A stretch of DNA of 64,000 bases. Source: Paraphysomonas bandaiensis. Taxonomy: Eukaryota > Protista > Chrysophyceae. The notes below the pieces were generated by a model, which was not told the origin of the DNA, did no database searches, and saw only the letters and a list, made by a program, of their open reading frames with translations. Of this stretch, positions 2 to 63,036 are shown piece by piece; position 1 is the first letter of the stretch; each line of letters begins with the position of its first letter. The translations under genes were made by a program, and so were the position numbers. The stretch lies in the NCBI GenBank assembly GCA_965644295.1, contig CBFFRP010000111.1:62001-126000 (forward strand). The letters are read 5' to 3'.

Positions 2-3000
2 ATTTCCTGGGTAATAGTTGAACAAGGAGCATACAACATATCAGACAAACGTATGTATGTAAGAAAAGATAACATTACTAGGACGTCTGCCTCAGGCTCT
101 GAGAGTATGGTGTCAGTAAACTACCCTTCCGGATGTGACTCAGAAAATACGTCGTGTTCCTTCTCTGTTCCCGGAAATATTGTAGTAATTTCTCAACTAC
201 AAACCTTGGTGTATGACAGATTTTTGTCTTCGAGAATATCGAAAGTGCGAAATACACAAGTAACATTTATTTTACAGCCCCATGATTCAAGTGATTCCAG
301 TTACTACTCTATGCCTGACCCCGAAACCATTGCATTTTTGGCAATGGAGAATAACTTTATGATGTCATGTATGGAAGGTGGTGGCTTTGAGCTAGCTCAA
401 CTGAGTTCAGTCAGCCATGAATCCAGTGCTATCAGTTTTGGCTTAAGTTACCAAAATATTCCTGGTGTGTTTGGGTCAATCGGATCGACGAATGGACTCG
501 GTGACTCCACCTCTTTAAGAATATTTTCCCAGTCTTATGCATCAGCAGAATTGCGAGCCCAGGAAGATCAATGTGAAGATGAAGAAATGGTGCACATATC
601 GGAGCGTGTATTTATAATGGCTTTTGGTGAGATCGATACCTCAGTGGCTATGGATTCACAGCTGTGTTACATTCGATTTCATCCTGAATTCACCTCAGGT
701 CCAACTATTTCACCGTCTTCCTATCCGTCGTGTGAACCATCATCAGTACCATCGTTGACTCCCACTGCTTGTCCTAGCAGCATTCCATCTGCTGCACCTT
801 CCTCTGAACCCACATCTCAACCTTCATTTGTCCCATCGTCCATCCCATCTTGCGAGCCATCTTCCAGGCCATCGCAGAGTCCAACTGCATGCCCAAGCTC
901 TGTTCCATCTGCGACACCAACCTCTGTGCCCACCTCTGAACCGTCATCCGGGCCATCGTCAGCCCCCAGTGCTTGCCCAAGTAACACTCCATCATCCGTC
1001 CCATCTTCGTTGCCGTCGTCGACCCCCACTGCTTGCCCAAGTACCATTCCATCATCCGTCCCATCATCACTGCCGTCGTCTGGCCCCACTGCTTGCCCAA
1101 GTACCATTCCATCATCCGTCCCATCATCACTGCCGTCGTCTGGCCCCACTGCTTGCCCAAGTACCATTCCATCATCCGTCCCATCATCATTGCCATCGTT
1201 GACTCCCACTGCTTGTCCAAGCAGCATTCCATCATCCGTCCCATCATCATTGCCATCGTTGACTCCCACTGCTTGTCCAAGCAGCATTCCATCAGCAACA
1301 CCTTCCTCTGAACCTACATCTGAACCTTCATTTGTCCCGTCTTCCATTCCATCTTGTGAACCATCATCCAGACCATCGTGGAGTCCCACTGCGTTCCCAA
1401 GTACCATTCCATCTGCCTCTCCTAGTTTAGTTCCGACAGGTGCACCATCGACATATCCATCAAGCGTGCCGTCTGGAGAGCCATCCAGCTGTCCCACTAG
1501 CAAGCCTACATCTTTGCCATCGACTTTTCCAACAGCTGTGCCATCTTTTTCTCCATCAGCCAGTCCCACCACTATGCCTACCAGTCTACCATCCTCGCTG
1601 CCGACATCGCTCCCTAGCAGCACGCCCAGTGGCCTACCATCAACTATTCCCACAGGGTTGCCTTCTCTATTTCCAAGTGCGGTACCTTCTTCGTACCCCA
1701 CTCGAGCTTCGGCTAATAACTATTATTATAATTTTGACAGCAGAACATTGCTGGATACTTCTCCAATCAGTGGTGATATCATGTTCCAGTTCTATGTTAA
1801 CACTGCGAACGATCTACAAACGGTCAAATCAAACTGGCTACGTTTTCTAGATGATTATTTTGTCACACCATTTAACATCGACTACTACCAGTTGGAAATG
1901 TGGGTGGCGTGGTTAGATTATAGACGCTCTTTGATATTGGAATGGTCCAGCACTTGTGCCGAGGTAGCTGCTGTAGGGGACTTGGTTGGGACAGTGATGG
2001 CTTCGCATGGGGACTCCGTTCAGCATACTTGTGGGACCACAACGTGGACTGCCACGAGTCAGCGGTTGTGTGCTAATTGCGGCGAGGAATACTGTACGAG
2101 GCCTGAGATGGGAGTATTCACTCTGCCAATAGAGCCGTCGTGCTATACAAGTAATGGGGATCATTTCACAAAACTTGCTGGTGTTGTAACTGTACGAACA
2201 GTAGAGCGTATTGCACCTTCTGTCCCAGTTATACACAGCATCCGCACTACGCCGTCAAGCTCATCAGTGATGCTCGCAGTGAATGTTTCCACATCGACGG
2301 TAGATGGAAGGCTATACTGTCGTGTTTTTAGTGGAGATATCAGTGATGATTATGTAAAGCGTTCCGCAGTAGTTGCGTCTGGAAAGTCAATTAGTATTCC
2401 TCACACAGCTTCTGAATTTGAAGTTTTGACACTGGAGTTAACTGGTTTGATTGCTGCGACTTCGTACTCTTCTTATTGTCATGTCACAGATTCCTTTGGG
2501 AATAGAGGCTCGAGGCCATCAATGCTTGCAACGAAACAATTGTTTATTACATCCTGTTGCAGAAATATCATATTTTCAGAAGTGCCGTCTCACATTGTGT
2601 TTGGAACATATACTACTTCCAGTGCTTCATTCAAATTTCGTCTGCCATCATACCCCACCTATACGACCCAAAGCAGTGGGTTAAATGTTTATGTTGAAAT
2701 ATACACTAAAAATGGGGCCAAAGCTTCGAACTCTGAAATTAGTGCTTTTCCATCGAGTCACACATTTAAACTGGATAACAAGCACTTGGGATTGAGCAGA
2801 GACTTTGTTGTTAACTATTACGGATCTGAAGCGACAACGTTTACAGTATCGCTTTCCTTAAGTGGATCAAGTGTATACAATTTCTCTTCTCCTGTTCAGA
2901 TTCGGACAATTACTGATGTTCCCCCGCCAACCTTGCACTCTGCAATATTTGGCGACTTTGGTCAAAGAATCATGGTATACTTTGATAACCCGACAGATTA

Positions 3001-6000
3001 TGGCGGTGTCGATACGACTTCTAATTGGATCTGCTCGGAATTGCTAATATTTACGGGGAGTGCCATATCTTCTTGCGTGTGGATCAGCGACACGAGTATA
3101 GAAGTGACACCATGTGGCTCAGGTTTGTGCGAGGGGCTCGTTGATAGAAGTGCAATCCCTCTAATTGAACCGGGTGGTGTCATTTTCCTTCGCGGCGGAA
3201 TGGTGCGTTCTCTATGTACATTGCCATCACAGAGCATGTGTGCTAGCTACGAAGCAGCGGCGGAACAAACCATAGTTGTTTCCTACCCACAGTCTTTTGT
3301 TCGGCCAGAAGTGCATCTTGAGACTTCTCAACCTGGTGGTTCATGCGGTATGGACTTAATTGTTGATGCTTCCGCATCACTAGGAAGTTGTGGTAGATAC
3401 TGGAAAACTGTTGTCTGGTCTGTCCAAGCAGCAGATACAAGTGACACCAAAGACATATTGCACATTTTGGAATCATCAATGGTAAATCGTCCCATAACCA
3501 TTCCGTACGAACTACTCTCCAGCACGTCATATATAATATCACTTCATCTCGGAAATTTCCTTCAGAATACCACAGATGATCTGTCTTCGGCGTCAGTAAT
3601 TCTTGATGTCTTTGCTTCTTCTACATCTCTCAATCCGACTGTTAAAATCCATGGTCCTTCATTCCGTGTAGTGAAAACATACAATGAATTTGTTGTATCA
3701 AGTGCTGTCAGTATCCCCAGTTGCTCGGGTGCCAATATCAGCGAAGTGAAATGGAAAGCTTATCTTGAAACGCTGTATATCAGCGACACTGTCTCTTCTA
3801 GTGTAGATCCTTTGACACTGAGACTGCCACCATACTCTCTTGAGCCAGGAGGAGATTATTCTTTTTATATGATAGTTACTCTGAGTGATGGGACCACAGC
3901 CATGGATATGATTAGAGTCAGCGTTGCTTCGGATGAACTTTATGTGAAAATAAGCGGCCCAGATAATGTACTCGTTTCGAATCAGACTGAACTAATACTT
4001 GACGCTTCAGAATCGGTTGATGCTGATGCAACTCCTGAGGGTTCGACTTTGAACCTGACTTGGAGCTGTCAGGTAACTAGCTTGAGAGACTCTACTGATT
4101 TTTCGATGTATGGATCCCACTGTAATGAGCTCATCAATATTCCTAACCTGGTGGAGTGGCCATCCCTTGAGCCTGTTCCCCTTTTTACCAATATGATGCT
4201 TCCAGGTGTTGTCTACACTTTTACTGCGTCGGCATTTTCTTCAATGGGCATATACTATTCAGATCATGTTACCGTCGAGGTATCTACACCTGCTTCACCT
4301 ACTCCAAGGGTTTCTATAACATCATCGTTCACTTACTTCGTTGCCAGTGATATTCTCCGTTTATCGGGTACTGTAGCACCCGCGAGTATGGGCCTGTCTT
4401 ATGGTAACATAAACGCCACGTGGAGTCTTCACGACAGCTCCCTGAATGAAATTCCTTTAACGGAATTGTTAATGACATCTGTGTCCAAAACAAGATTCGG
4501 CAACGAAAGTTTCAAATTCCCTTTGGGATGTTTCCCGTATTCATTTGTTCCAGGAAGAAGTTACACTTTCCGGCTTTCAGCCTTCTATGGTGGAGCTGGT
4601 GTACATGAGGCTGTATACTCCGATATTACAGTTATTGCTAACGGCCCTCCTTCCTCTGGAGGCATCGATGTGACGCCATCAGTAGGAAACGCCTACGAAA
4701 CTAATTTCCTTTTGTCTGCTCCGTTATGGGTTGATGATTATAACGATTACCCATTGTACTACTCATTCACATACTCTGAACGAAGAGTAGCCAATAGCAC
4801 TGGTACGACATTTCAGCCCATGGGGCTTGCAAGTGAGCAGTCATTTGTATACAGTCAACTTCCATCCGGTAGTCCCGGTACTAATTTTACTGTATACTGT
4901 CGAGTAGTAGTGAAAGATGTGTTTGGCGCTTCAACGGATGCTTTGACTAATGTTACCGTGAAGAATAACACCGAATTGACTGTATCATTTAGTAACTTCA
5001 GTGATGCTATTACTTTTGGAATCAGCAGCTCTGATGTTAGTTTCATGTCCAAGAGTATAAGCAATATTGCCTCGTTGATATCTCAAATTGGATGTCGGTA
5101 CTCCCCAGACTGCTCCGCATTGAATCGACAAGATTGTTTCAATGTAGCGCATACATGTGGTGATTGTTTGACTGGTTATAATGGTGTAGTTGGGCCGTCG
5201 AATAGCTATTGTTCTCAGGAGGAGGAAGAACTACTGCCTGTCGACTCAGTTTGTTCATCGGATTCCGAGTGCTCTCTGCAGCATTGTGGGGGTGGAAGAT
5301 GTGTAACTCCAGAAAAGTCGTGTCCCACTGTGTCTGATGAAGAGTGCTCTGGTAACGGTAAATGTGTGTTTCGCAATGGGAACGGAGACATTGTTGAATC
5401 TTGTCTTGTGACAGACCCATATTGTACGCCGCTGTGTGAATGCCACGGCAGCACTTATTTTGGTCCAGCGTGCTCAATGAAGTACGAGGAGTATACCAAC
5501 CAGAGTAAAACAAAGGAACTCATTTGTAAATCGCTATCTTATATTGCTCATTCAAGCGATCATTCCTATGAGTTAGTAGATTTGTTGGCGTCCTCTTTGT
5601 CTGCTACTCTGAACTATCCTGAGTTCATATCTCTTGAAGCAACCATGAATTGCTTGGATGTCTTAACGTCAGTAGTGAACATTACTCGAAGTGGTGTTTT
5701 GCATAATGAAGCCTTGCTGTCGAACTCAACTTCAGTTGCTCCTCAGGTTAATATAGCAGCTGCAATTTCTTATTTCAATGGCGTGTTATTGGTGCTACAT
5801 GGTAGCGATCTCGATGATTTAGTGGACGAGATTGAAACCGAAATCTCTTTTGCCTCCGAATCACTTGTTACCATTGTCAACGATAACATGATCGCTGGGC
5901 AAAATAACATTGAAATTGTTAGTGACGGTGTGCGTATATCTGTGCAGTACAAATCTTTTGAGAGCATTGCTGGGGCAATATTATCTCCTCCTGCTACAAG

Positions 6001-9000
6001 GCTGGAATCTGTGTACGCTGTTGATCAGCCTCAGATTATACTACCCAGTGGTGGTTTGGAGGCTTGTAGAGCGATAAATGGTGATGAGGAATACATCAGG
6101 CTTTCTGTGTTGCAATGGGGAACTAACCCTCATATGAATGCCACCAACCGAAATATTAGCCAGCTCCTGTCTCGAGTATTTCAGTTCAGTTCTTTCTCGA
6201 ATTCTCAGGATGGTGGTGGTAGTGGCAGTTCACAGTTCGTTTCCGAATTTTCAACTAGTTATAAGCTCATCATGCAATGGATGACTCCCCAGAGCTGGAC
6301 CCAGCGTGAGCCTAACTGTACTATGTTTATTGATTCAGAACCTGCGACATGCCCATGTGATGTTCTCAGTTACACTGCAACCAATGTGACTTTTGAATGC
6401 TACAACCTCCTTGATTTATGTCCGTCCACTTCTTCGAGGAGAATGCTCAATGGTCATCGGTTATACAACGAAGACATGCATCATCCCCATCGAGATCTTA
6501 TCACCTCCGATAGTAAACACAGAAGATTGGATTTCGATTATGCTGGTGAGGCTGATGATGGGTCGGAAGATAGCAGTATTGTTGAGTACGGTGCACTTAT
6601 CACGACAATTAAGTCAGAACTGGATACTACTCTGACAAATGACCCATCCAGCATTGGAGACATCAGGGAGGCTATTGCGTTGGTTTCCTTGCTAAGTATT
6701 ATTTTTTTCAGTATGCTATTTGGGTACGGCATATTTCAACGATGGGATGAAGATGATGTGAAGAAGATAATGGCTCAACGAGAACGAAATAAAGCAATGA
6801 ACGGAATGGAATCGCCCTCTCGCAGGGATTTTCACCAATCCCTGTCCATTTTAGGTGCGTTTACCAACACTCCGAGCAAGAGGGATATGATACTAAGACA
6901 ACAAAGTTCTCAATCGGCCGCGAATGATACTAATTCAGCACCTTCACCAACGATAAAAAGAGCCGTTGCGGTCGATAGTGATGATCAATCACCACAGAGT
7001 CCTAATTTCTCTCGTACAGACTCCAACTCCAATACACCGGAAATTCGAAGGGACTTTTCGTTTGACATGATTGCATCTTTCAAGTGGAGACGATTTGGAA
7101 GTGCGGACTCTACAGATAACGCAATGAAACGAATCGATTCGTCGGCTGTAAATGAGGTAGTGTCATCCTTTTTTGACAAAGCTCTTCCGCCTTCTAGTTT
7201 ACTGGCTGTCCAGAGTGGATGGCGAAGATTTTTTCAGGCAGTATACAGACAGCATGGTAGGTTATGAGATAAATTGGTCACGTAAAATTAACGACTTTGT
7301 TGTAGACTGGGTTCGCTGCGTGACTTACTCTTCGCTTCGACTGCCACGAACTATCCGGTTTCTTGTAGTATGTACAGACGTGCTGTTCTTGCTCTTTGTA
7401 GATTCGTTGTTTTTTGGAATTCTGTTTCGCGACGATGGTACATGTGGTTCGTATTCGGGAACGACTGAAGAGCAGTGCCTTTCCCCGCCATCAAATTTTC
7501 AGAGTGACCAGAGTTTGTGCGAATGGGACCCTGAGTCTGAAAACTGTGCACTACGTCCTCCACCCTCTACCATTCAGTTCTACATGGTCGTTGCCGTGTT
7601 GGTGACGTCGTTTTCTATCTTACCGTCAGTGTTTTGTGCGTACATACTAGAAGAATTCTGTGCTTTGACTCCAGGTTTCAAGAAAGCACGTGGAGATGGT
7701 AGTAGCGACGACAGTTCTTTGTCTGGAGTCTATGCTGCAGGTGGCATGGAGAAAGGTCGCAACCGAGGTAACAGTCTTCTAGGAAATGTAATCCAAGCTC
7801 CTGTATCTGGAGAGGCCACGTCTGTGTCGTCCCAGCTACTTGACTTGTATACGTACTATGAGTACGCAACCATTGAAGAGGAGACGAATGTGCTTGTTGC
7901 AGCCGTGGAAGAATATTTACGTGCCAGTATAGAAGACTCTCCCTTACCATGGCGAGTCGACCCCTCAAAGCCAAATGCTAGTGTAAATGCCGAGGCAGTA
8001 ATGGAACTGGTAGGTGTAAATGCTGATGGGACCCCGGCAACACTCTCCCTGAGACAGTGGTTGCTTTTTGGAACCCAACGAAAACGCCTGGAATATAAAA
8101 TTCGCAAAGTGAGAACAGAAGCCAAGGAGATATTGGATATGATGTCGACCTTTGAAGATGATGAAGACGATAGCAAAGACATGGCCCTTATTCAACAATT
8201 TATACTTGAACAGCTTACACCTTTTAAGCGATATGCGGTAAAGAAAGACTTCTTTCAGTTTGACACTGCCCTGCCCCAGCATTGTGATACACTTGTGTGG
8301 ATCTGTAGCTGGACATTTATGATTCTGGTATGGGTGTTTTTGGTGTTTTGGATATTTCAATGGGCTATTGTTAACAGCGGTGGTACTGTCAATGAATGGA
8401 GTGTGTCCATTGGATTGGTTGTCGTACAGGACGCGATTATCAACCAGCTGTTGCGAATATTTGTCGTTCATGTTATCGCCATTGAAGCTGCCCGTCCTCA
8501 ATTGAATCAGATATATCACACTTTAAACAACATCACTACATCGAAGATAAAAAGCAAAAGGGATGCTGTGTGTGGTGTTCGGGCCGTCCAATTTCTCTCT
8601 GCCGCATGTAGAGCAGCGAGGTCGCGGGAGTTGTTTAACTTACCGTCAGCTGAAATATTGCATCAGCTTAATGATAATGACGTTGCTTTGTGTCGGGCAT
8701 CTAGACGAACTAAATTAGGCCTGTTTGTCACTTTTTTTATAGCTATCCCCGTTGCTCTAGCTTTGTCACATGAATCTATTCAAGAGAGTGTATTGGATGT
8801 GATTCTCCCTACCCTGTGGGCATGTTTTGTAATATCCAATGCTTATTTGTATGAGATTTCTATATATGCGATGCTGGCACCGTATGTTTGTCTAGGGCTG
8901 TATCTATTTTTTCGACAGGTATACTTGAAACCAATGCGACGTCGCAAATATCAGCGGAATCCTTTTACACATCGAAAGTCTAAACGAGTTCAAAATCATA

Positions 9001-10010
9001 ATGCTAAGAGCACTTTCTTTGGAACCAGATTTAAGAAAGATAGCGATGATGTGTACGACAAGCTCACGCCACTACAACAACTTAACTGGAAGAATATGAA
9101 CTTAATGCTCTGGAAGATGCAACCGAAGGCGTACGAAGAAAGCACGGATAGTTCTGACAGAGCTTCAAAGTGGAAAATTTCAGATGATATCACTGTTATT
9201 CTAGGGCCCTATGAAGTGAAGCGACTCAGATCTCGGAGACGGGATGAATCGGCCCAGTCATGCGTTTCGCATTCTGCGGAAGCAAGTGGCGCCGCTTTGA
9301 GTTGCGATAATGATTTCGCTAATAATATTCCTGGCGAAGTCGAGGATATGATGGTCTGTAAGCATGAAAAGGGCCTAAAAGATCGCAGTTTTCGTCTCAA
9401 AAAGCGCGACTCCTTTGTTGTAAATAAATGCTTATGGAATGTGGATCCAGAAATGACTTCAGAGCAAGTCGTACCTGTCTACCCTACTTTCCCTACAAGT
9501 CGAAAATATAATAAATCTAGTTTGGAGGCGGCGATCAATCGAAAGAAGAATACATCTCTGCCACTTGAAGAGATGCTAATGTCATCAAACTATGATCTTA
9601 ACTTTAGGAATCCTTTTGATGCCGAGGTCGATCCTAAGTGTTCGACACTAAGCTCGAACGAAGATGCTAATGCTGAGTTTGATACATTTGAGAAGCTACA
9701 CCAGGTTGGTGGCGACTCTGAGGATTTGAATGGTGTTAGTTGCCCTACACCAGAATACTCTACGTCATACTCCTCATTAGCCGATGATACTAGACGTTAT
9801 CCTGGGCAGCAGCTCCTTGATTGGCGAGGAAGGCGAAGACAGATTGTCAAAACGCCAACTGCTATGAGTATTGCTTTGGGCAGTCCTTATGTGCCTGATG
9901 GTAATCAATGTCCCCAAGTATTGGAATGCGCTTCTTTTTCACACGATGATTCTGTCGAAGAAGTAATGAAATTTATTCACCGTGAGAATTTAGATGTATG
10001 TACACTGTAG
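2..10010 (+). CDS. Giant (>3300 aa, 5'-truncated) polycystin-1/REJ-like multi-pass surface protein: lectin-like repeats, Pro/Ser/Thr stalk, REJ module, Cys-rich/EGF region, multiple TM helices
   Basis: Frame is open from window start (ISWVIVEQGAY...). ORFs 53..7267 and 7173..10010 join in frame via a 49-nt GT-AG intron 7257..7305 (QH-D-WVRC). REJ motifs LILDASESVDAD...LTWSC and NGPPSSGGIDVTPSVG...WVDD...YPLYYSF; EGF-like CSGNGKC...CECHG...GPAC; several hydrophobic segments near the C-terminus. Confidence 0.8.
712..1700 (+). repeat. Coding PS/PT tetrapeptide repeats including near-perfect 60-bp tandem units (PTACPSTIPSSVPSSLPSSG)
   Basis: Lines 1021-1261 show a 60-nt period (cccactgcttgcccaagtaccattccatcatccgtcccatca...); a longer block at ~750-900 recurs at ~1255-1410. 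Confidence 0.95.
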
Positions 10011-36134: not shown

Positions 36135-36603
36135 AGATGTTATATAGTTATATGGTACATGATCCCACAGCAGTGTGTACAGCAGAGTCCATAGCAACTG
36201 AATATATATATACAATACAGCAGTGTACTTCAATATATACGGTACATATTTCTATATGCTGCTATGTATGTATATGTATGTATGTATATGTATGTATACC
36301 GTCATCGTCGTCATAATATTCCGTTAGATGGACAGTACCATCAGCAAGAAGTGTGTTATAGACAACACGTAATATCCTATCATATTAATATGATTCGCTA
36401 TAATATATACAGACTTTGAAATGATTCGCTATGATGATGGGAAAGTACGAATGGACCTGTATAGTCATCATAACATTCCGATGAACGCATCATCGTATCT
36501 TTTAAATCGATATACTCTATACAATAAAACAGCCTCGTACCTGTCAACTGTCAACAGATACATACATACAGTACATATACCTACCTACCTACCTACCTAC
36601 ATA

Positions 36604-36637
<34 letters not shown>

Positions 36638-36717
36638 CACACATAGATACGTACATGATTCATATATATAACAGTTCACTCATCTAACAACACATACAAC
36701 TATAACATAATCCAAAT

Positions 36718-39700
36718 ATGTTCATCATAACATTATTCTATTTCCTCCTCCACACACCTCACTATCTATCTGATGAAGTATTAGGAGCTGGAGCTTCATT
36801 CCCTCAAACCTTATATGAAAATGCTATTACAGCCTATAAATCTCAATATAATGACGAGATATCATATCATACAATGGGAAGTGGTCGTGGAAGATGTCGA
36901 ATTAAATCATGGGAAGATACATGTGCCTCTGATGATGGACTTGATCCTCGTTATATTGATTTTGCTGGTTCAGATTCCATATTAACTCCTGAAGATTATC
37001 ATACTTATCCTGATTTACAGGTTTATTAAGACTGTTTATTATATCTTGTAATATATTATCTAATGTATCTATTATACAGATGTACCCGGTGGTGGCTGGT
37101 GCAGTAGCTGTTGTTTACAATATTCCTGGTATTTCATCGACATTGGAATCGAGAAGGCTTGTCTTAAGCAAAGAAGTAGTGGCACAGATATTTAGAGGTG
37201 AAATTCGATACTGGAATGACACAAGGATTCGATCCACTCAAAATAGTTTTGTGAAGGATCGCCTACCTGATGCTCCTATTGAAATCGTAGTGCGAAGTGA
37301 CTCTTCAGGAACGACGCAAATATTTAAATCTGCATTATCTTTTTTTGATAGCGCTTTTAATACCAGTATCGGCTCATCCAGTAGCTCGCTATGGCATGGG
37401 GTCAATGTGTCAAAAGTAGATGGTAACAGTGGCGTGGCAGCATACGTACTATTTACTCCCTTCACAATTGGCTACACTGTCCTAAGTGAGGCCAATCAGT
37501 TGGATCTCCCTGTAATAGGGCTTGGACAAAATAGTGGATCGGCTGTGTTTCCAACTTTGGGGAGTGTAACGGCAGCTCTTCTTGATGCCGGGAGTCAATT
37601 TGGCAACAACGGTGATGATCCAGAACACATGACTGCGAACCTATTCGTAACTCAGTCTTCGAACGCCTGGCCTTTGTGTGGATACACTTACTTGGTAATG
37701 CGAAAAGAAACTCTTCGTGAAGGTGGAACTCACTCGTCACGCCTATCCACATCGAAATTTTGGAATTGGTTTTACAGATCTGGCGTCGTGCGAGAGATAG
37801 CAGCTGCGAACTCCTTCGCCATGTTGCCCGACTCGGTGAGAGACATTGTGCTAGGCCGCTTCAACAGAGATATTAAAATCGACGGAAATGCAGTACATTT
37901 CTTTGTGCCCCTACAAGTTCCTCCTGTTTTAGATATTTTCTTCAAGCATATTGTAGTACCTGCCTACGGGAATATTGACGCTATTTCCCCGATATTGTCT
38001 GTGGTATCCTTAAATGAGTCATACTCTAACAACGATATTGTGATCACATTTAAATCTCATGCTGATATACTTCTCAGCAGCAACCATAATACTGTTGGGT
38101 TTAACTTGGCCACCTATAGCTTGGCGGTTGTTGTCAATCTGTGTGGTAACTTTCACCGGAGCCAGTGTCCGTTCGTTAGCAGTCCCCCTGTTCAACTTGA
38201 CATTCTAACTCTCGGTGCTATCTTCGCTGGAAAGATAACTAATTGGGGAGATATAAGCATTACTTCGAGAAACAAACATTTGGTAGGTGTGGACGAAACT
38301 ATTGTTATCGTTTCAGATTCCCGACATAGTTTGACATTGGTATCCTTGAAATCTATTTTTGAAAGTATAGTTCCAGGTATGTTGATGATTGACTTTGTGG
38401 GCGTGTCTAAAGTTAATGTATTGTTTGCAGAGTTTGAGTACTGCGAAAACTGCATGTGTGTTGAGAGTAATGAGAATCGTGTGAAGGCAAAGGTATATAA
38501 TACGGCTTTTAGTATAGCGGTGCTCTCAAATCTTGGTTTACTTGGGCCACAAGCATCCCCTGTTACCCTGGTCAATGCTGATACAACGTCAATAAATAGA
38601 ATTGATTCCCCACGGTCTGTGCGCCAGGGAGTATTTTCACAGTGTACAGGATCTAATTGCTATCCTCTGAGTGTTGCGCTTTCAGTAGTTACTACCAAAG
38701 AGCACAAGGACTGTGAATTGAGTGATGATGATGTGACGGTCAAGCGCGTCCGTTTTTTGAGTTGGGTTTCTCGTCAAAGCGAAGCTTTGAAGTCGCTAGG
38801 ATTTACGCCATTGGGCGACACAGGTGAAGTAGAGAGTGCACTGAAATCAATCACTTGCCATGGAGAATCCATACTGGATGTAAACAACGACAGAAATCTT
38901 TTGCCCACAAGCCTTGTAACTGGGTTGCTATCTCTGATGTACATAGTTGCGACTGTAGTACTTGCCTGTATCGCAGTATTAGTGATTAAGCGAAGAGAAA
39001 AAGATGTGCGCCTGTGGCAGCCATTCTACTTATATGTATTACTACTTGGATGTCTCATAACTCTATCAGCTATTATTCCTATGAGTATGGATGATAGGGA
39101 TATAAAACCCAACAGCGACGGAAGCTACCCTGTCCTGGATCATGCTTGCATGGCCACGCCATGGCTGTATTTCATTGGTTGCACTATGATGTATATGGCA
39201 TTACTAATTCGAGTATGGCGTTTGATTTGCTTGTCTTCAACACTAAAGCGAGCGACGGTGAGAACATCTGACATGCTGCCATATTTACTTTTCCCCATGA
39301 TGCTTTCGATTGTTGTCCTTTTCACATGGCAAGTATACGATCCACTACGGTGGGTACGAGTCGCTATTGAATTCGATTCAGAGGGAAACACTACATCATC
39401 TCGTGGAAAATGTTCGTCAGATTCAATGTCGCTCTTTTTGTTTGCACTTTTTTCTTTAGTACTTGGTCTTCTTATGTACGGTCAAGTTTTATGCTTCAAA
39501 GCTCGTAATATAGCTGCTGTCATAAGCGACAGCAAGTGGCTCTCAGCTGCTCTATCAAGCAGTGCTCAAGCCCTCTATTTCTCTATTCCAGTTTTTTATT
39601 TCATAAAGAAGAATCCAACAGCAGCCTATTTCGTGAAAGTTATGTCTGTACTCGCACAAGTATCCTTTGTTGTGGGGTGTATGCTGTTTCCCAAAATCTT

Positions 39701-39872
39701 TCATTTATTTGTTAGGACACATATATTGGTTATACCTAATGAGGATTGCGTGGCATATCCTTGTGTGCGACACGAAAGCGATAAGAGTGTCTCCACTTCG
39801 ACGTGTACGTTGGATCATGTCTCATCACAAAAGAAAAGGTGGGAAAGCATTGTGGAAGAAACTGAGTGCTAA
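36718..39872 (+). CDS. PstS-type phosphate-binding domains fused to a class C GPCR (GABA-B-like 7tm_3) transmembrane domain
   Basis: 59-nt intron 37021..37079 gives LQ|MYPVVAGAVAVVYNIPG. Signal peptide; PstS motifs GAGASFP, GSGRG, DFAGSD, IFRGEIRYWND, VRSDSSGTT, GNSGV, AWPLCGYTY; second repeat AIFAGKITNWGD...YPLS; 7tm_3 motifs WQPFYL, CMATPW...IRVWRL, WQVYDPLRW, FKARNI...SDSK, LFPK. Confidence 0.9.
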
Positions 39873-40429
39873 AGTATATATAAACTAAATTTTGTGTGGT
39901 AATATTATTGTCTGAGCTGTTGTGTGCATGTCAAGTACAAAAATATAGCGATAATATATTATACTAGTGTTTTTTTTTGTTTTTTTTAAATCAACTTTTG
40001 ACGTTGTGGATGGTGTAAACTTAATAACTGAACATTATATTCACTCGATACTCAGTTGTTAAAATTATAAACAATATCTCTTATCATTCAGTGTCATTCA
40101 CAAATAAAATAATATCAATTGTCATTTGTAAGCCCATTTGGGGTGAACTGCTACTTATGAACTCAACAATTAATATGTGCAGTGTGCCACTCCACCTGAG
40201 TTCTTCGAATCCATATAAATTCAATATATACAATAGTTTTCAATACCTGTGCTGCTCTTGATACTTGATAATCTTATATAGCCACCACATATATCACTGT
40301 ATCTGATGAATTTCATAGTACTTCATTAAATACACATAACACCGTCTTTAACTATTGTTTTCATCACCAGCAGTTTTATTTCAAAGTCCTTAACCTGATG
40401 CTTATTTTGTCAGCTATATGCAAAACTAA

Positions 40430-60100: not shown

Positions 60101-62150
60101 AGCGCAGTAGATATTGTACAGGTGCATGTGGCATCCCCCAAGGTCACTTTAAGGTAAAACTTATCGTCTTCACTATGCATCATCGAAAGCCGAGCCTCTC
60201 TCGGTAGAGGAGAACTCAGAAACTGGTCGATAAGTCCTGCTTTAGATGGAGATTTCTTCATCCCGTAATATTGCATCGATCCCTGAAGAGATTCCAGGTC
60301 ACCATCGCCTTCAAACTCAAGTATTTCACTCAATGTGGAGTCTCCAAAGCGGTCAAAGAACGACATGCGCAATGAAGCCGTACGGGAGTAAGGGTTGCTG
60401 TCCTCCCGATCTCTATCTTCCCAATCACAAGTGTCCTCACAACATATATTACCTTCAAATGCATCATCTATGTCACATTGCGATTGATTTGCAGCTAAAT
60501 CCTCTTCGCATATCACCTACATGTGAGACAAACCAGGTCAATACCACCATATTCATGATACATACAGCAGCATCCCCACTAAAGTGTCATGTACAAGAAT
60601 ATTATTCAAGAAATCGTACACAACCATCACCTGGAGAACTCTTGCAAGACAAGGAAAATGAGTCCCAAACTGTGACCCGGGAGGAATGACAATGTCGGGT
60701 AGATATTGCTCGTTGTCATCTGACATAGGGGCCTCAACCCTTTCTCCTCTTCGAATTTGAACTCCCAAAAGCGGTAACATAGGACTCCTCGCTACCTCTC
60801 GCATAAATCCCACCAGCTCTCGCATAATCTGCCCATCCTCCTGTCCTGACTCGCTCAATGTGCTTGCGCTCGATGGTGCCACTGATGCACCACCCGGAGA
60901 TGCGGGGCCGTGCAGTTTAACGGCAGCAAGCACGAAGTCTTCAGAGAAATGGACCAGCCAAGTCTCGAGAAATAGAAGCACCGCCAACTTTATCTATAAG
61001 GGTAGACACAATCCGTCAAAATAGTCGATAAATCCTACGGGTGCAAACACCACTATATCTGTACAAAACACGAAGTATCTAACACATTACAATTCCATGA
61101 CAACAATCTATGACATCAAACTACCGATGCGTAAGACTCCAACATCATCTTCTGTTCATCACGCTCTGCTGAAAAAAGCTGTAGCGTCGCCTGAGCAGTA
61201 TCATCCCCGGTGTGCTGTACCACACAATGCAGCGCAACGAATATGTCACACATATTCAGAGATATTCATAACAGTAAAGGGTACCTGGGATAATTCTGAG
61301 GGAGATGACAGCCAATAAAACTGAGGACCAATAACGTGACGACTCTACAAGTGAATAGTTGCAAGTGTCATAATCGCAGTCAGCTGAATGTAAAGCAAAC
61401 CTGTGTCAGACCAGCTCCACCATCGGCTCCAGTCGCCGTGCGTTCTGCCCCTCCAGATGGATACCCACAAGCACATAATGCATTGTTGGAAGTTAGACCA
61501 AGACATAGCGGACATCTTGTGCTCGTATTAGCTGCACACAAGAAATACATTATAATAGCAAACATACTCGCAATAGTTGTTTCACATAAATACTCCTCAT
61601 ATAATACACAATACACACGAACTCATATCATAACAACATTACATTTCTCTTCCTCAATACCAAACGAAGCTGTCTCATATCTAAATTTCTCTGCATACAT
61701 ATCCACTTCTTTAGGTGTTAACATAAATCTTTTCATTAAATATTCTAATATATATTTAGGTCCAATAAACATCCGTAAATGTAATAGAAATGTCCATATT
61801 TGTGATTGGGATGTAGTTTCTAATGATGTTAAACGTCTAAGTATAGCAGGTAATGTACCGCCTTTCATATATCTAATCAAACAAAAAAATATCATCATAA
61901 ATGAATGATTTGAATGTATTCTATATAACCTTTTTGAGATATCGTCATCATCTGATGTGATAATATCCTCGGAGTATGTTTCTATTGTAGAGATCAATTG
62001 TAGCCATGGTTCATACATTGAATCATATTTAGGGGGAGTAGAAATTGATGAGTTCATAAGTCCTTTCATGAGGATGATTGTATAAGCTAATGATGTGGTT
62101 ATGACATTCGGAAGAAGATGATACTGATACTGCTTTGCACCATACCACAA
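57194..62150 (-). CDS. RasGEF (REM + CDC25 domains), multi-exon; 5' end uncertain
   Basis: REM YMKGGTLPAILRRLT...TFLLHLRMFIGP...LLFLETWLVHFSEDF; CDC25 IAENIT...IVNEIL...RAEVI...ALQSHSVHRLRSSW, PCMPYI, LINFGKLR, MWERSKALE*. Confidence 0.82.
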
Positions 62151-62167
62151 CTAAGATAACACACACC

Positions 62168-63036
62168 TGTATGTATGTATGTATGTATGTATGTATGTAT
62201 GTATGTATGTATGTATGTAGGTATGTATGTATGTATGTATGTACGTATGTATGTATGTATGTATGTATGTATGTATGTATGTATGTATGTATGTATGTAT
62301 GTATGTATGTATGTATGTATGTATGTATGTATGTATGTATGTATGTATGTATGTATGTATGTATGTATGTATGTATGTATGTATGTATGTATGTATGTAT
62401 GTATGTATGTATGTATGTATGTATGTATGTATGTATGTATGTATGTATGTATGTATGTATGTATGTATGTATGTATGTATGTATGTATGTATGTATGTAT
62501 GTATGTATGTATGTATGTATGTATGTATGTATGTATGTATGTATGTATGTATGTATGTATGTATGTATGTATGTATGTATGTATGTATGTATGTATGTAT
62601 GTATGTATGTATGTATGTATGTATGTATGTATGTATGTATGTATGTATGTATGTATGTATGTATGTATGTATGTATGTATGTATGTATGTATGTATGTAT
62701 GTATGTATGTATGTATGTATGTATGTATGTATGTATGTATGTATGTATGTATGTATGTATGTATGTATGTATGTATGTATGTATGTATGTATGTATGTAT
62801 GTATGTATGTATGTATGTATGTATGTATGTATGTATGTATGTATGTATGTATGTATGTATGTATGTATGTATGTATGTATGTATGTATGTATGTATGTAT
62901 GTATGTATGTATGTATGCATGTATGTATGTATGTATGTATGTATGTATGCATGTATGTATGTATGTATGTATGTATGTATGTATGTATGTATGTATGTAT
63001 GTATGTATGTATGTATGTATGTATGTATGTATGTAT
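62168..63036 (-). repeat. (TATG)n/(CATA)n microsatellite, ~870 bp
   Basis: Directly visible; nearly perfect. Confidence 0.99.

Follow-up and report, generated by a model that had tools for sequence, protein, structure and literature searches.

A candidate phosphate-sensing class C receptor with a PstS-type ectodomain in Paraphysomonas bandaiensis

Marine primary production is limited by phosphate. In the chrysophyte Paraphysomonas bandaiensis one gene combines a PstS-type domain, known from bacterial phosphate uptake through an ATP-binding cassette (ABC) importer, with the seven-transmembrane (7TM) domain of a class C G-protein-coupled receptor (GPCR). The gene occupies positions 36718-39872 on the forward strand of the window, the 64,000-nucleotide stretch of DNA that was analysed (positions 62,001 to 126,000 of contig CBFFRP010000111.1, assembly GCA_965644295.1); all features of the gene given below lie on this strand. 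An earlier note, made from the sequence alone, had proposed a phosphate receptor. Our computational analysis makes it reasonably probable that the gene product is a cell-surface class C GPCR that senses phosphate via its PstS-type domain. The parts of this proposal that we infer are phosphate binding, a plasma-membrane location, dimerisation, G-protein coupling and a downstream response.

The PstS and 7TM parts are encoded on one spliced message

A six-frame listing of the window contained two forward-strand open reading frames (ORFs), one of 103 codons starting at 36718 and one of 930 codons at 37080-39872, and a GT...AG stretch lay between them at 37021-37079. The earlier note had read this stretch as an intron, and transcript contigs demonstrated that it is removed exactly as predicted. 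The transcript contig L001, from a Joint Genome Institute (JGI) sample, is 3246 nt long and aligned to the window in three blocks with 99.1-99.6% identity. The block junctions identified two spliceosomal introns, at 37021-37079 and 38377-38430. L001 contains a single ORF of 1013 amino acids (P0001), with the coding sequence starting at base 45. The claim of one spliced ORF was therefore upheld, while its estimated length of about 1030 amino acids was too long, the second intron having been missed. Translation of the spliced window also produced 1013 amino acids and differed from P0001 solely at residue 74 (G in the window, R in P0001).

Public contigs compared with window positions 36600-40100 gave the same result. 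Both splice joints were seen in the RNA-type runs X8 and X11, which stem from different studies and carry different organism labels, and a spliced contig of 3437 nt spans 36687-40100 with both introns removed. In contrast, the DNA-type run X5 retains both introns. Four identical fragments of the 3' half of the gene were present in X15, a polyA marine metatranscriptome, and the runs that contain the sequence are marine. These results show that window positions 36718-39872 hold a real, expressed, spliced, single gene and that the PstS and 7TM parts reside on one message; the transcripts do not separate the two halves, whereas separate transcripts would have spoken against the earlier proposal.

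The coding part of exon 1 (36718-37020, residues 1-101) encodes the predicted signal peptide and the N-terminal third of the first PstS domain, as judged by the ORF, the match to the TIGR00975 profile and the transcript alignment. It is followed by intron 1 (37021-37079; 59 nt, GT..AG) and by exon 2 (37080-38376), which was delimited by the ORF and transcript alignments and encodes the remainder of PstS domain 1 and the first half of PstS domain 2. Intron 2 (38377-38430; 54 nt, GT..AG) is in phase 1, in frame and without a stop codon. Each of the two introns is spliced out in L001, X8 and X11. The coding part of exon 3 (38431-39872) includes the stop codon TGA at 39870-39872 and encodes the end of PstS domain 2, the 7TM domain and the C-terminal tail. 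The 5' untranslated region covers at least 36678-36717, with L001 aligning from 36678 and the X8 contig from 36687, and the 3' untranslated region covers at least 39873-40032, the end of the L001 alignment, with the X8 contig reaching 40100.

One might suspect that two neighbouring genes had been merged into a chimera, that the sequence came from bacterial contamination or that it was a pseudogene, as PstS is typically bacterial and the initial gene model depended on one predicted intron. However, the coding regions of the PstS domains are interrupted by two GT-AG introns, which transcripts show to be spliced out, and one 1013-residue ORF is carried by one transcript contig. In addition, 71 of 169 fetched proteins, from other organisms, have the same collinear architecture, and the neighbouring genes are eukaryotic (REJ, bromodomain, RasGEF). 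An artefact of this kind is already refuted by the transcript evidence, and we assign it a negligible probability.

Some sequence variation was observed at the locus. Eight single-base differences from the window (36840-39980) are common to the RNA-type runs X8 and X11 and to the DNA-type run X5, under another organism label. They resemble the differences expected between strains or species more than RNA editing. The change 36937 G>A results in G74R, which falls in an insert of PstS domain 1 that is specific to eukaryotes. In the presumed promoter, a microsatellite, (ATAC)n with about 25 copies (36558-36656), ends 60 nt upstream of the start codon, and run X5 has a 19-nt insertion behind position 36677.

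A tandem PstS ectodomain joined to a class C 7TM domain

Reading of the sequence placed a predicted signal peptide at residues 1-19 (36718-36774), with the hydrophobic core FIITLFYFLL; in the AlphaFold2 (AF2) model the predicted local distance difference test score (pLDDT) of this segment is low, and residues 2-11 form a helix. Residue 20-21, where the PstS fold begins, aligned to residue 4 of mature E. coli PstS, and PstS domain 1 extends over residues 20-378 (36775-37910), split by intron 1. Pfam PBP_like_2 matched the spliced product with 96.4 bits (cut-off 27) and also matched both unspliced ORF pieces. When TIGR00975, the NCBIfam profile for PstS, was used, exon 1 corresponded to profile positions 3-60 and exon 2 to positions 74-308. 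The matches are consecutive, and therefore both ORFs are collinear halves of one PstS domain. Domain 1 scored 181.7 bits over positions 3-308 of 315. It aligned with E. coli PstS (1IXH) in phmmer at E 2e-28, and its identity to bacterial PstS is 26-28%. The AF2 model of domain 1 matched PstS in Foldseek with a template modelling (TM) score of 0.90 and an E value of 1.7e-23 (root mean square deviation 3.0 A over 355 alignment columns), and domain 1 has the type II bilobate PstS fold. At the level of the fold, this agrees with what the earlier note had expected from a structural comparison; conservation of the pocket was assessed by sequence alignment.

In the phmmer alignment to 1IXH, E. coli T10, F11, S38, D56, R135, D137, S139, G140 and T141 correspond to S27, F28, S55, D86, R173, D175, S177, G178 and T179, so that each of the nine residues that form the pocket in E. 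coli PstS has its counterpart, with one conservative swap, T10 to S. This is as the earlier note had stated, and the motifs it located, GAGASFP at 36784-36804 (residues 23-29) and RSDSSGTT at 37293-37316 (residues 173-180), are exact. The motifs MGSGRG and DFAGSD are also present in domain 1. Most of 48 family members keep the phosphate ligands (R135 in 41 and G140 in 42 of the 47 aligned). In E. coli PstS, Asp56, the equivalent of D86, selects protonated phosphate and rejects sulfate. The completeness of the pocket, including D86, points to phosphate as the ligand.

Some features of domain 1, together with points from the literature given further below, count against a phosphate receptor. The TIGR00975 score of the whole protein, 195.5 bits, falls just under the equivalog cut-off of 205 bits, and by this profile domain 1 is a full-length PstS homologue but not an equivalog. 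A 13-residue insert containing C60 and C69 lies between S55 and D86; it is conserved in the family consensus, is not found in bacterial PstS, and may affect the pocket, to which it is close. Arsenate or other tetrahedral oxyanions may also still be compatible with the sequence.

A receptor of the same kind could accordingly recognise another ligand, such as arsenate, phosphite, pyrophosphate or polyphosphate, or a small organophosphate. This would be in line with the eukaryote-specific insert near the pocket, with the score under the equivalog cut-off and with the serine at the T10 position, where Ser and Thr alternate across the family. On the other hand, all solved relatives above noise are orthophosphate binders, D86 is present and the R-x-D-x-S-G-T motif is intact, and no similarity to phosphonate or phosphite binders was found among the Pfam and NCBIfam profile matches. 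We consider another ligand quite unlikely, and the sensing of phosphate remains the reading that we prefer.

The stretch between domain 1 and the 7TM domain was left unexplained in the earlier note. It is now accounted for by a second PstS-fold domain, PstS domain 2 (residues 380-690, 37914-38900), which is split by intron 2. The domain 2 sequence alone gave a weak PBP_like_2 match. When a profile built from 44 homologous segments was compared with the PDB, it matched PstS proteins along its entire length (E 3e-29). A separate AF2 model of domain 2 had a pLDDT of 86.7, and its top 48 Foldseek matches were all phosphate-binding proteins (E 4e-12, TM score about 0.6). D514, R516 and L519 stand in place of R135, D137 and G140, and the family shows no conservation in these columns. 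Profile and model indicate that domain 2 is a complete PstS fold whose phosphate ligands have been lost. The ectodomain is a tandem arrangement of a live and a dead PstS, and the approximately 310 residues between PstS and 7TM are not a linker. The host protein lacks a Cys of domain 2 that is near-invariant in the family (the alignment column at position 591 of P0001) but retains the neighbouring C610; the domain may contain an unpaired cysteine or a rearranged disulfide.

The class C 7TM domain comprises residues 693-964 (38907-39722). Pfam 7tm_3 matched with 89.9 bits (cut-off 33.5) over profile positions 7-251 of 251, which, with the PBP_like_2 match, places both modules on one chain as the earlier note had proposed. 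The full-length AF2 model had a pLDDT of 85.4, and the 7TM part formed seven long helices and a hairpin in extracellular loop 2 (ECL2) with pLDDT mostly 85-98. Its Foldseek matches were GABA-B2, GABA-B1 and GPR156 (E 1e-11 to 1e-13), with TM scores of 0.76-0.83 on 7TM-only targets, and phmmer aligned transmembrane helices 1 to 7 (TM1-TM7) with human GABBR2 at E 2e-13. The C-terminal domain is therefore a 7tm_3 domain of GABA-B-like character, in agreement with the earlier description. Hallmark residues aligned to human GABBR2 include C773 and C861 (TM3-ECL2), R794 (position 3.50), D900 (position 6.35) and P954-K955 (the PK motif of TM7). All 48 family members have the TM3-ECL2 cysteines and a basic residue at position 3.50, 45 of them have an acidic residue at position 6.35, and the PK motif is likewise conserved. 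No ANF_receptor or Peripla_BP match was obtained with Pfam in the ectodomain, which thus shows no type I flytrap of the leucine/isoleucine/valine-binding protein (LIVBP) kind. As a class C receptor the protein is therefore atypical, since its 7TM domain fits the class and its ectodomain does not. The cytoplasmic tail (residues 965-1013, 39723-39869) is short and predicted to be disordered, with pLDDT below 50 for residues 969-1013.

Relatives and genomic setting

An exhaustive phmmer search against 1.84 billion cluster representatives returned 169 matches below 1e-30, all of which were fetched. Many are about 1000 residues long, and in more than 15 representatives a single-stretch alignment covered query residues 1-875. 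A domain-probe scan detected the PstS and 7TM modules together in the 71 fetched proteins noted above, often in the order PstS-PstS-7TM. Named members include Heterosigma akashiwo A0A7S4DDI4, a protein of Chattonella subsalsa, Hondaea fermentalgiana GBG28277 and GBG31271, and Batrachochytrium salamandrivorans KAH9250086, so homologues occur in raphidophytes, labyrinthulids and chytrids. The automatic names of the relatives are 'GABA-B receptor subunit 2', 'hypothetical' and 'phosphate transport system substrate-binding protein'. In the ESM Atlas, clusters bearing the automatic name 7tm_3/PBP_like_2 list members from Chlorophyta and Discosea. Among the cluster representatives, phmmer yielded no relative with an identity between 35% and 98%.

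The PBP_like_2 plus 7tm_3 family shares with the host protein the order PstS, degenerate PstS, 7tm_3 and is collinear with it over about 875 residues at 29-35% identity. The pocket and the 7TM hallmark residues are the same, and the host copy differs by its long branch. In a quick maximum-likelihood tree it fell on this branch with three marine sequences (Shimodaira-Hasegawa-like approximate likelihood ratio test, SH-aLRT, 97), beside a raphidophyte clade, a position that is compatible with vertical descent in ochrophytes. A bacterial donor was sought among the short, high-identity PstS matches. One of these, P0052, is on a 1.3-kb contig without context; another, P0088, is on a 709-kb contig beside a reverse-transcriptase gene and is probably a fragment of a eukaryotic gene.

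The architecture has been noticed before. Krishnan et al. 2012 reported PBP_like_2 on a Glutamate-family GPCR, SPPG_06488, of Spizellomyces punctatus (PMC3251606), and Rolfe et al. 2016 described Plasmodiophora brassicae proteins that fuse 7tm3 to SBP_bac_1 or PBP_like_2 (PMC4815078). Port et al. 2013 described diatom class C GPCRs with other periplasmic binding protein (PBP)-type N-termini and did not mention a phosphate binder (PMC3727952). The PBP_like_2 plus 7tm_3 combination is thus already catalogued and has twice been remarked on, and the host gene is an additional member. The earlier note had allowed that the architecture might already be in databases, and these two papers and the database entries confirm it; the view that the architecture is unprecedented does not stand, as it is catalogued in other protists and in chytrids. 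The note's interpretation of the protein did hold up in each computational test that could be applied. What the present analysis adds is the second intron and the length of 1013 amino acids, the tandem live/dead PstS arrangement, the transcript proof of the fusion and the absence of PstC at genome level.

The literature also supplies the remaining points against a phosphate receptor. Rolfe et al. 2016 label their proteins novel transporters, some of them predicted phosphate carriers (PMC4815078), and in our literature search no family member turned out to have been studied for binding, localisation or signalling, as the earlier note had supposed for functional characterisation.

Some relatives carry the PstS ectodomain on other signalling modules. 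It is fused to adenylate/guanylate cyclase catalytic domains in P0012 (Euglena), P0042 and P0048, and to an ANF_receptor or Ephrin_rec_like domain in relatives including P0054 (ANF_receptor) and P0096. These fusions suggest, at the level of predicted domains, a wider set of eukaryotic phosphate-sensor architectures. The occurrence of one PstS ectodomain on either a 7TM domain or a cyclase is in keeping with a sensor module that has been coupled to more than one kind of signalling output.

Genome-wide searches covered the 62.6-Mb assembly of 669 contigs. The receptor gene is single copy, and PBP_like_2 occurs at no other locus of the assembly. The PstC permease (TIGR02138) had no match in the assembly, which is possibly incomplete, whereas a control search was positive in 14 of 14 reference genomes. 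With no PstC and no other PstS-type gene found in the assembly, the domain cannot serve an ABC importer, which fits the proposal of the earlier note that a transporter subunit was repurposed. Candidate partners for G-protein coupling are available, as the assembly contains at least four G-alpha loci; its 7tm_3 loci number about eight. About seven further 7tm_3 loci (contigs C239, C167, C25, C598, C298, C33 and C108) are all without a PstS domain. Several full-length silicon-transporter genes are also present.

These results bear on whether the protein signals at all. Membrane-anchored PstS is normal in Gram-positive bacteria, and a surface phosphate-capture or transporter-accessory protein, whose PstS domain would enrich phosphate at the membrane or pass it on to a transporter, could use the 7TM part as an anchor or conduit, in which case it would be non-signalling; we know of no transport activity of 7tm_3 domains, however. 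Capture or transport would agree with the annotation of PBP_like_2 plus 7tm3 proteins as putative phosphate transporters by Rolfe et al. 2016 (PMC4815078). Signalling is nonetheless favoured over transport or anchoring, because the class C activation residues are conserved family-wide, which an inert anchor would not need, because no PstC was found in the assembly, and because sister proteins carry the PstS ectodomain on cyclase catalytic domains. A role in capture or transport is in our view unlikely, and a signalling receptor for phosphate is the interpretation developed below.

The genes around the receptor are eukaryotic and encode a REJ-domain protein, a bromodomain protein, a RasGEF, a sulfotransferase-like protein and a methyltransferase; no connection to phosphate was found among the neighbouring genes at 31.5-47.5 kb. 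Window positions 53-10010 (forward strand) contain a pair of ORFs of 2404 and 945 amino acids in which a REJ domain of the polycystin type (E 4e-39) and PT repeats were identified; the pair probably represents a single, giant gene for a surface protein. Positions 62168-63036 are taken up by a (TGTA)n array whose 217 copies are almost without deviation (99% matches). This array accounts for the overlapping multi-frame ORFs as well as for the extreme GC skew in the last 2 kb of the window.

A proposed mechanism and its place among known systems

The closest characterised 7TM domains are those of the metazoan GABA-B subunits and GPR156 (fold TM score about 0.8 for GPR156), which are homologous to that of the host receptor and have in common with it the TM3-ECL2 cysteines, the 3.50/6.35 lock and the PK motif of TM7. 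Like the host receptor, they are without the cysteine-rich NCD3G domain. In contrast, their ectodomain is one type I LIVBP-like flytrap, whereas that of the host receptor consists of two tandem type II PstS folds, and the host receptor has a short tail with no evident coiled coil. Bacterial PstS, the binding subunit of PstSCAB, has the same fold as domain 1, in which all its ligand residues are present. The host domain differs in being covalently joined to a receptor, in its Cys-containing insert, in its tandem duplicate and in residing in a genome without a PstC match.

Two further systems each provide a precedent for one half of the idea of a phosphate receptor. The calcium-sensing receptor (CaSR) is a mammalian class C GPCR that responds to extracellular phosphate; unlike the predicted pocket of the host receptor, its anion site lies in a type I flytrap, where anions modulate the sensing of Ca2+. 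The Pseudomonas chemoreceptor CtpL reads phosphate through PstS, using it as a sensory partner and not for uptake. In that case, however, PstS is free and non-covalently associated, and it acts in a bacterial chemotaxis pathway.

On this basis the following mechanism may be proposed. The 19-residue leader would place the N-terminus outside the cell. PstS domain 1 would close on inorganic phosphate, held by the hydrogen-bond set of bacterial PstS, namely S27, F28, S55, D86, R173 (itself held by D175) and S177-G178-T179. The ligand-dead domain 2 could serve as a rigid stalk or transmission module, the role that the cysteine-rich domain or stalk has in other class C receptors. Movement of this stalk would then be passed to the 7TM domain, the lock between R794 and D900 would open, and a heterotrimeric G protein would be activated.

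In diatoms, phosphate resupply triggers fast Ca2+ signals, and the machinery that generates them was described as unknown in 2026 (PMC13187674). It is conceivable, although we hold it only tentatively, that the receptor is the missing cell-surface phosphate sensor of its host, upstream of rapid phosphate-resupply signalling, and that together with the PstS-cyclase fusions it belongs to a widespread, unrecognised eukaryotic system in which the ligand-dead domain transmits the signal. For the question of how eukaryotic phytoplankton perceive external phosphate, the gene offers a single-copy, expressed candidate with an intact predicted PstS pocket on a GPCR chassis. The tandem of a live and a dead PstS raises the question of how closure of the flytrap reaches the 7TM domain. 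If the proposal is true, a type II binding-protein fold would here be seen for the first time to function in a class C receptor.

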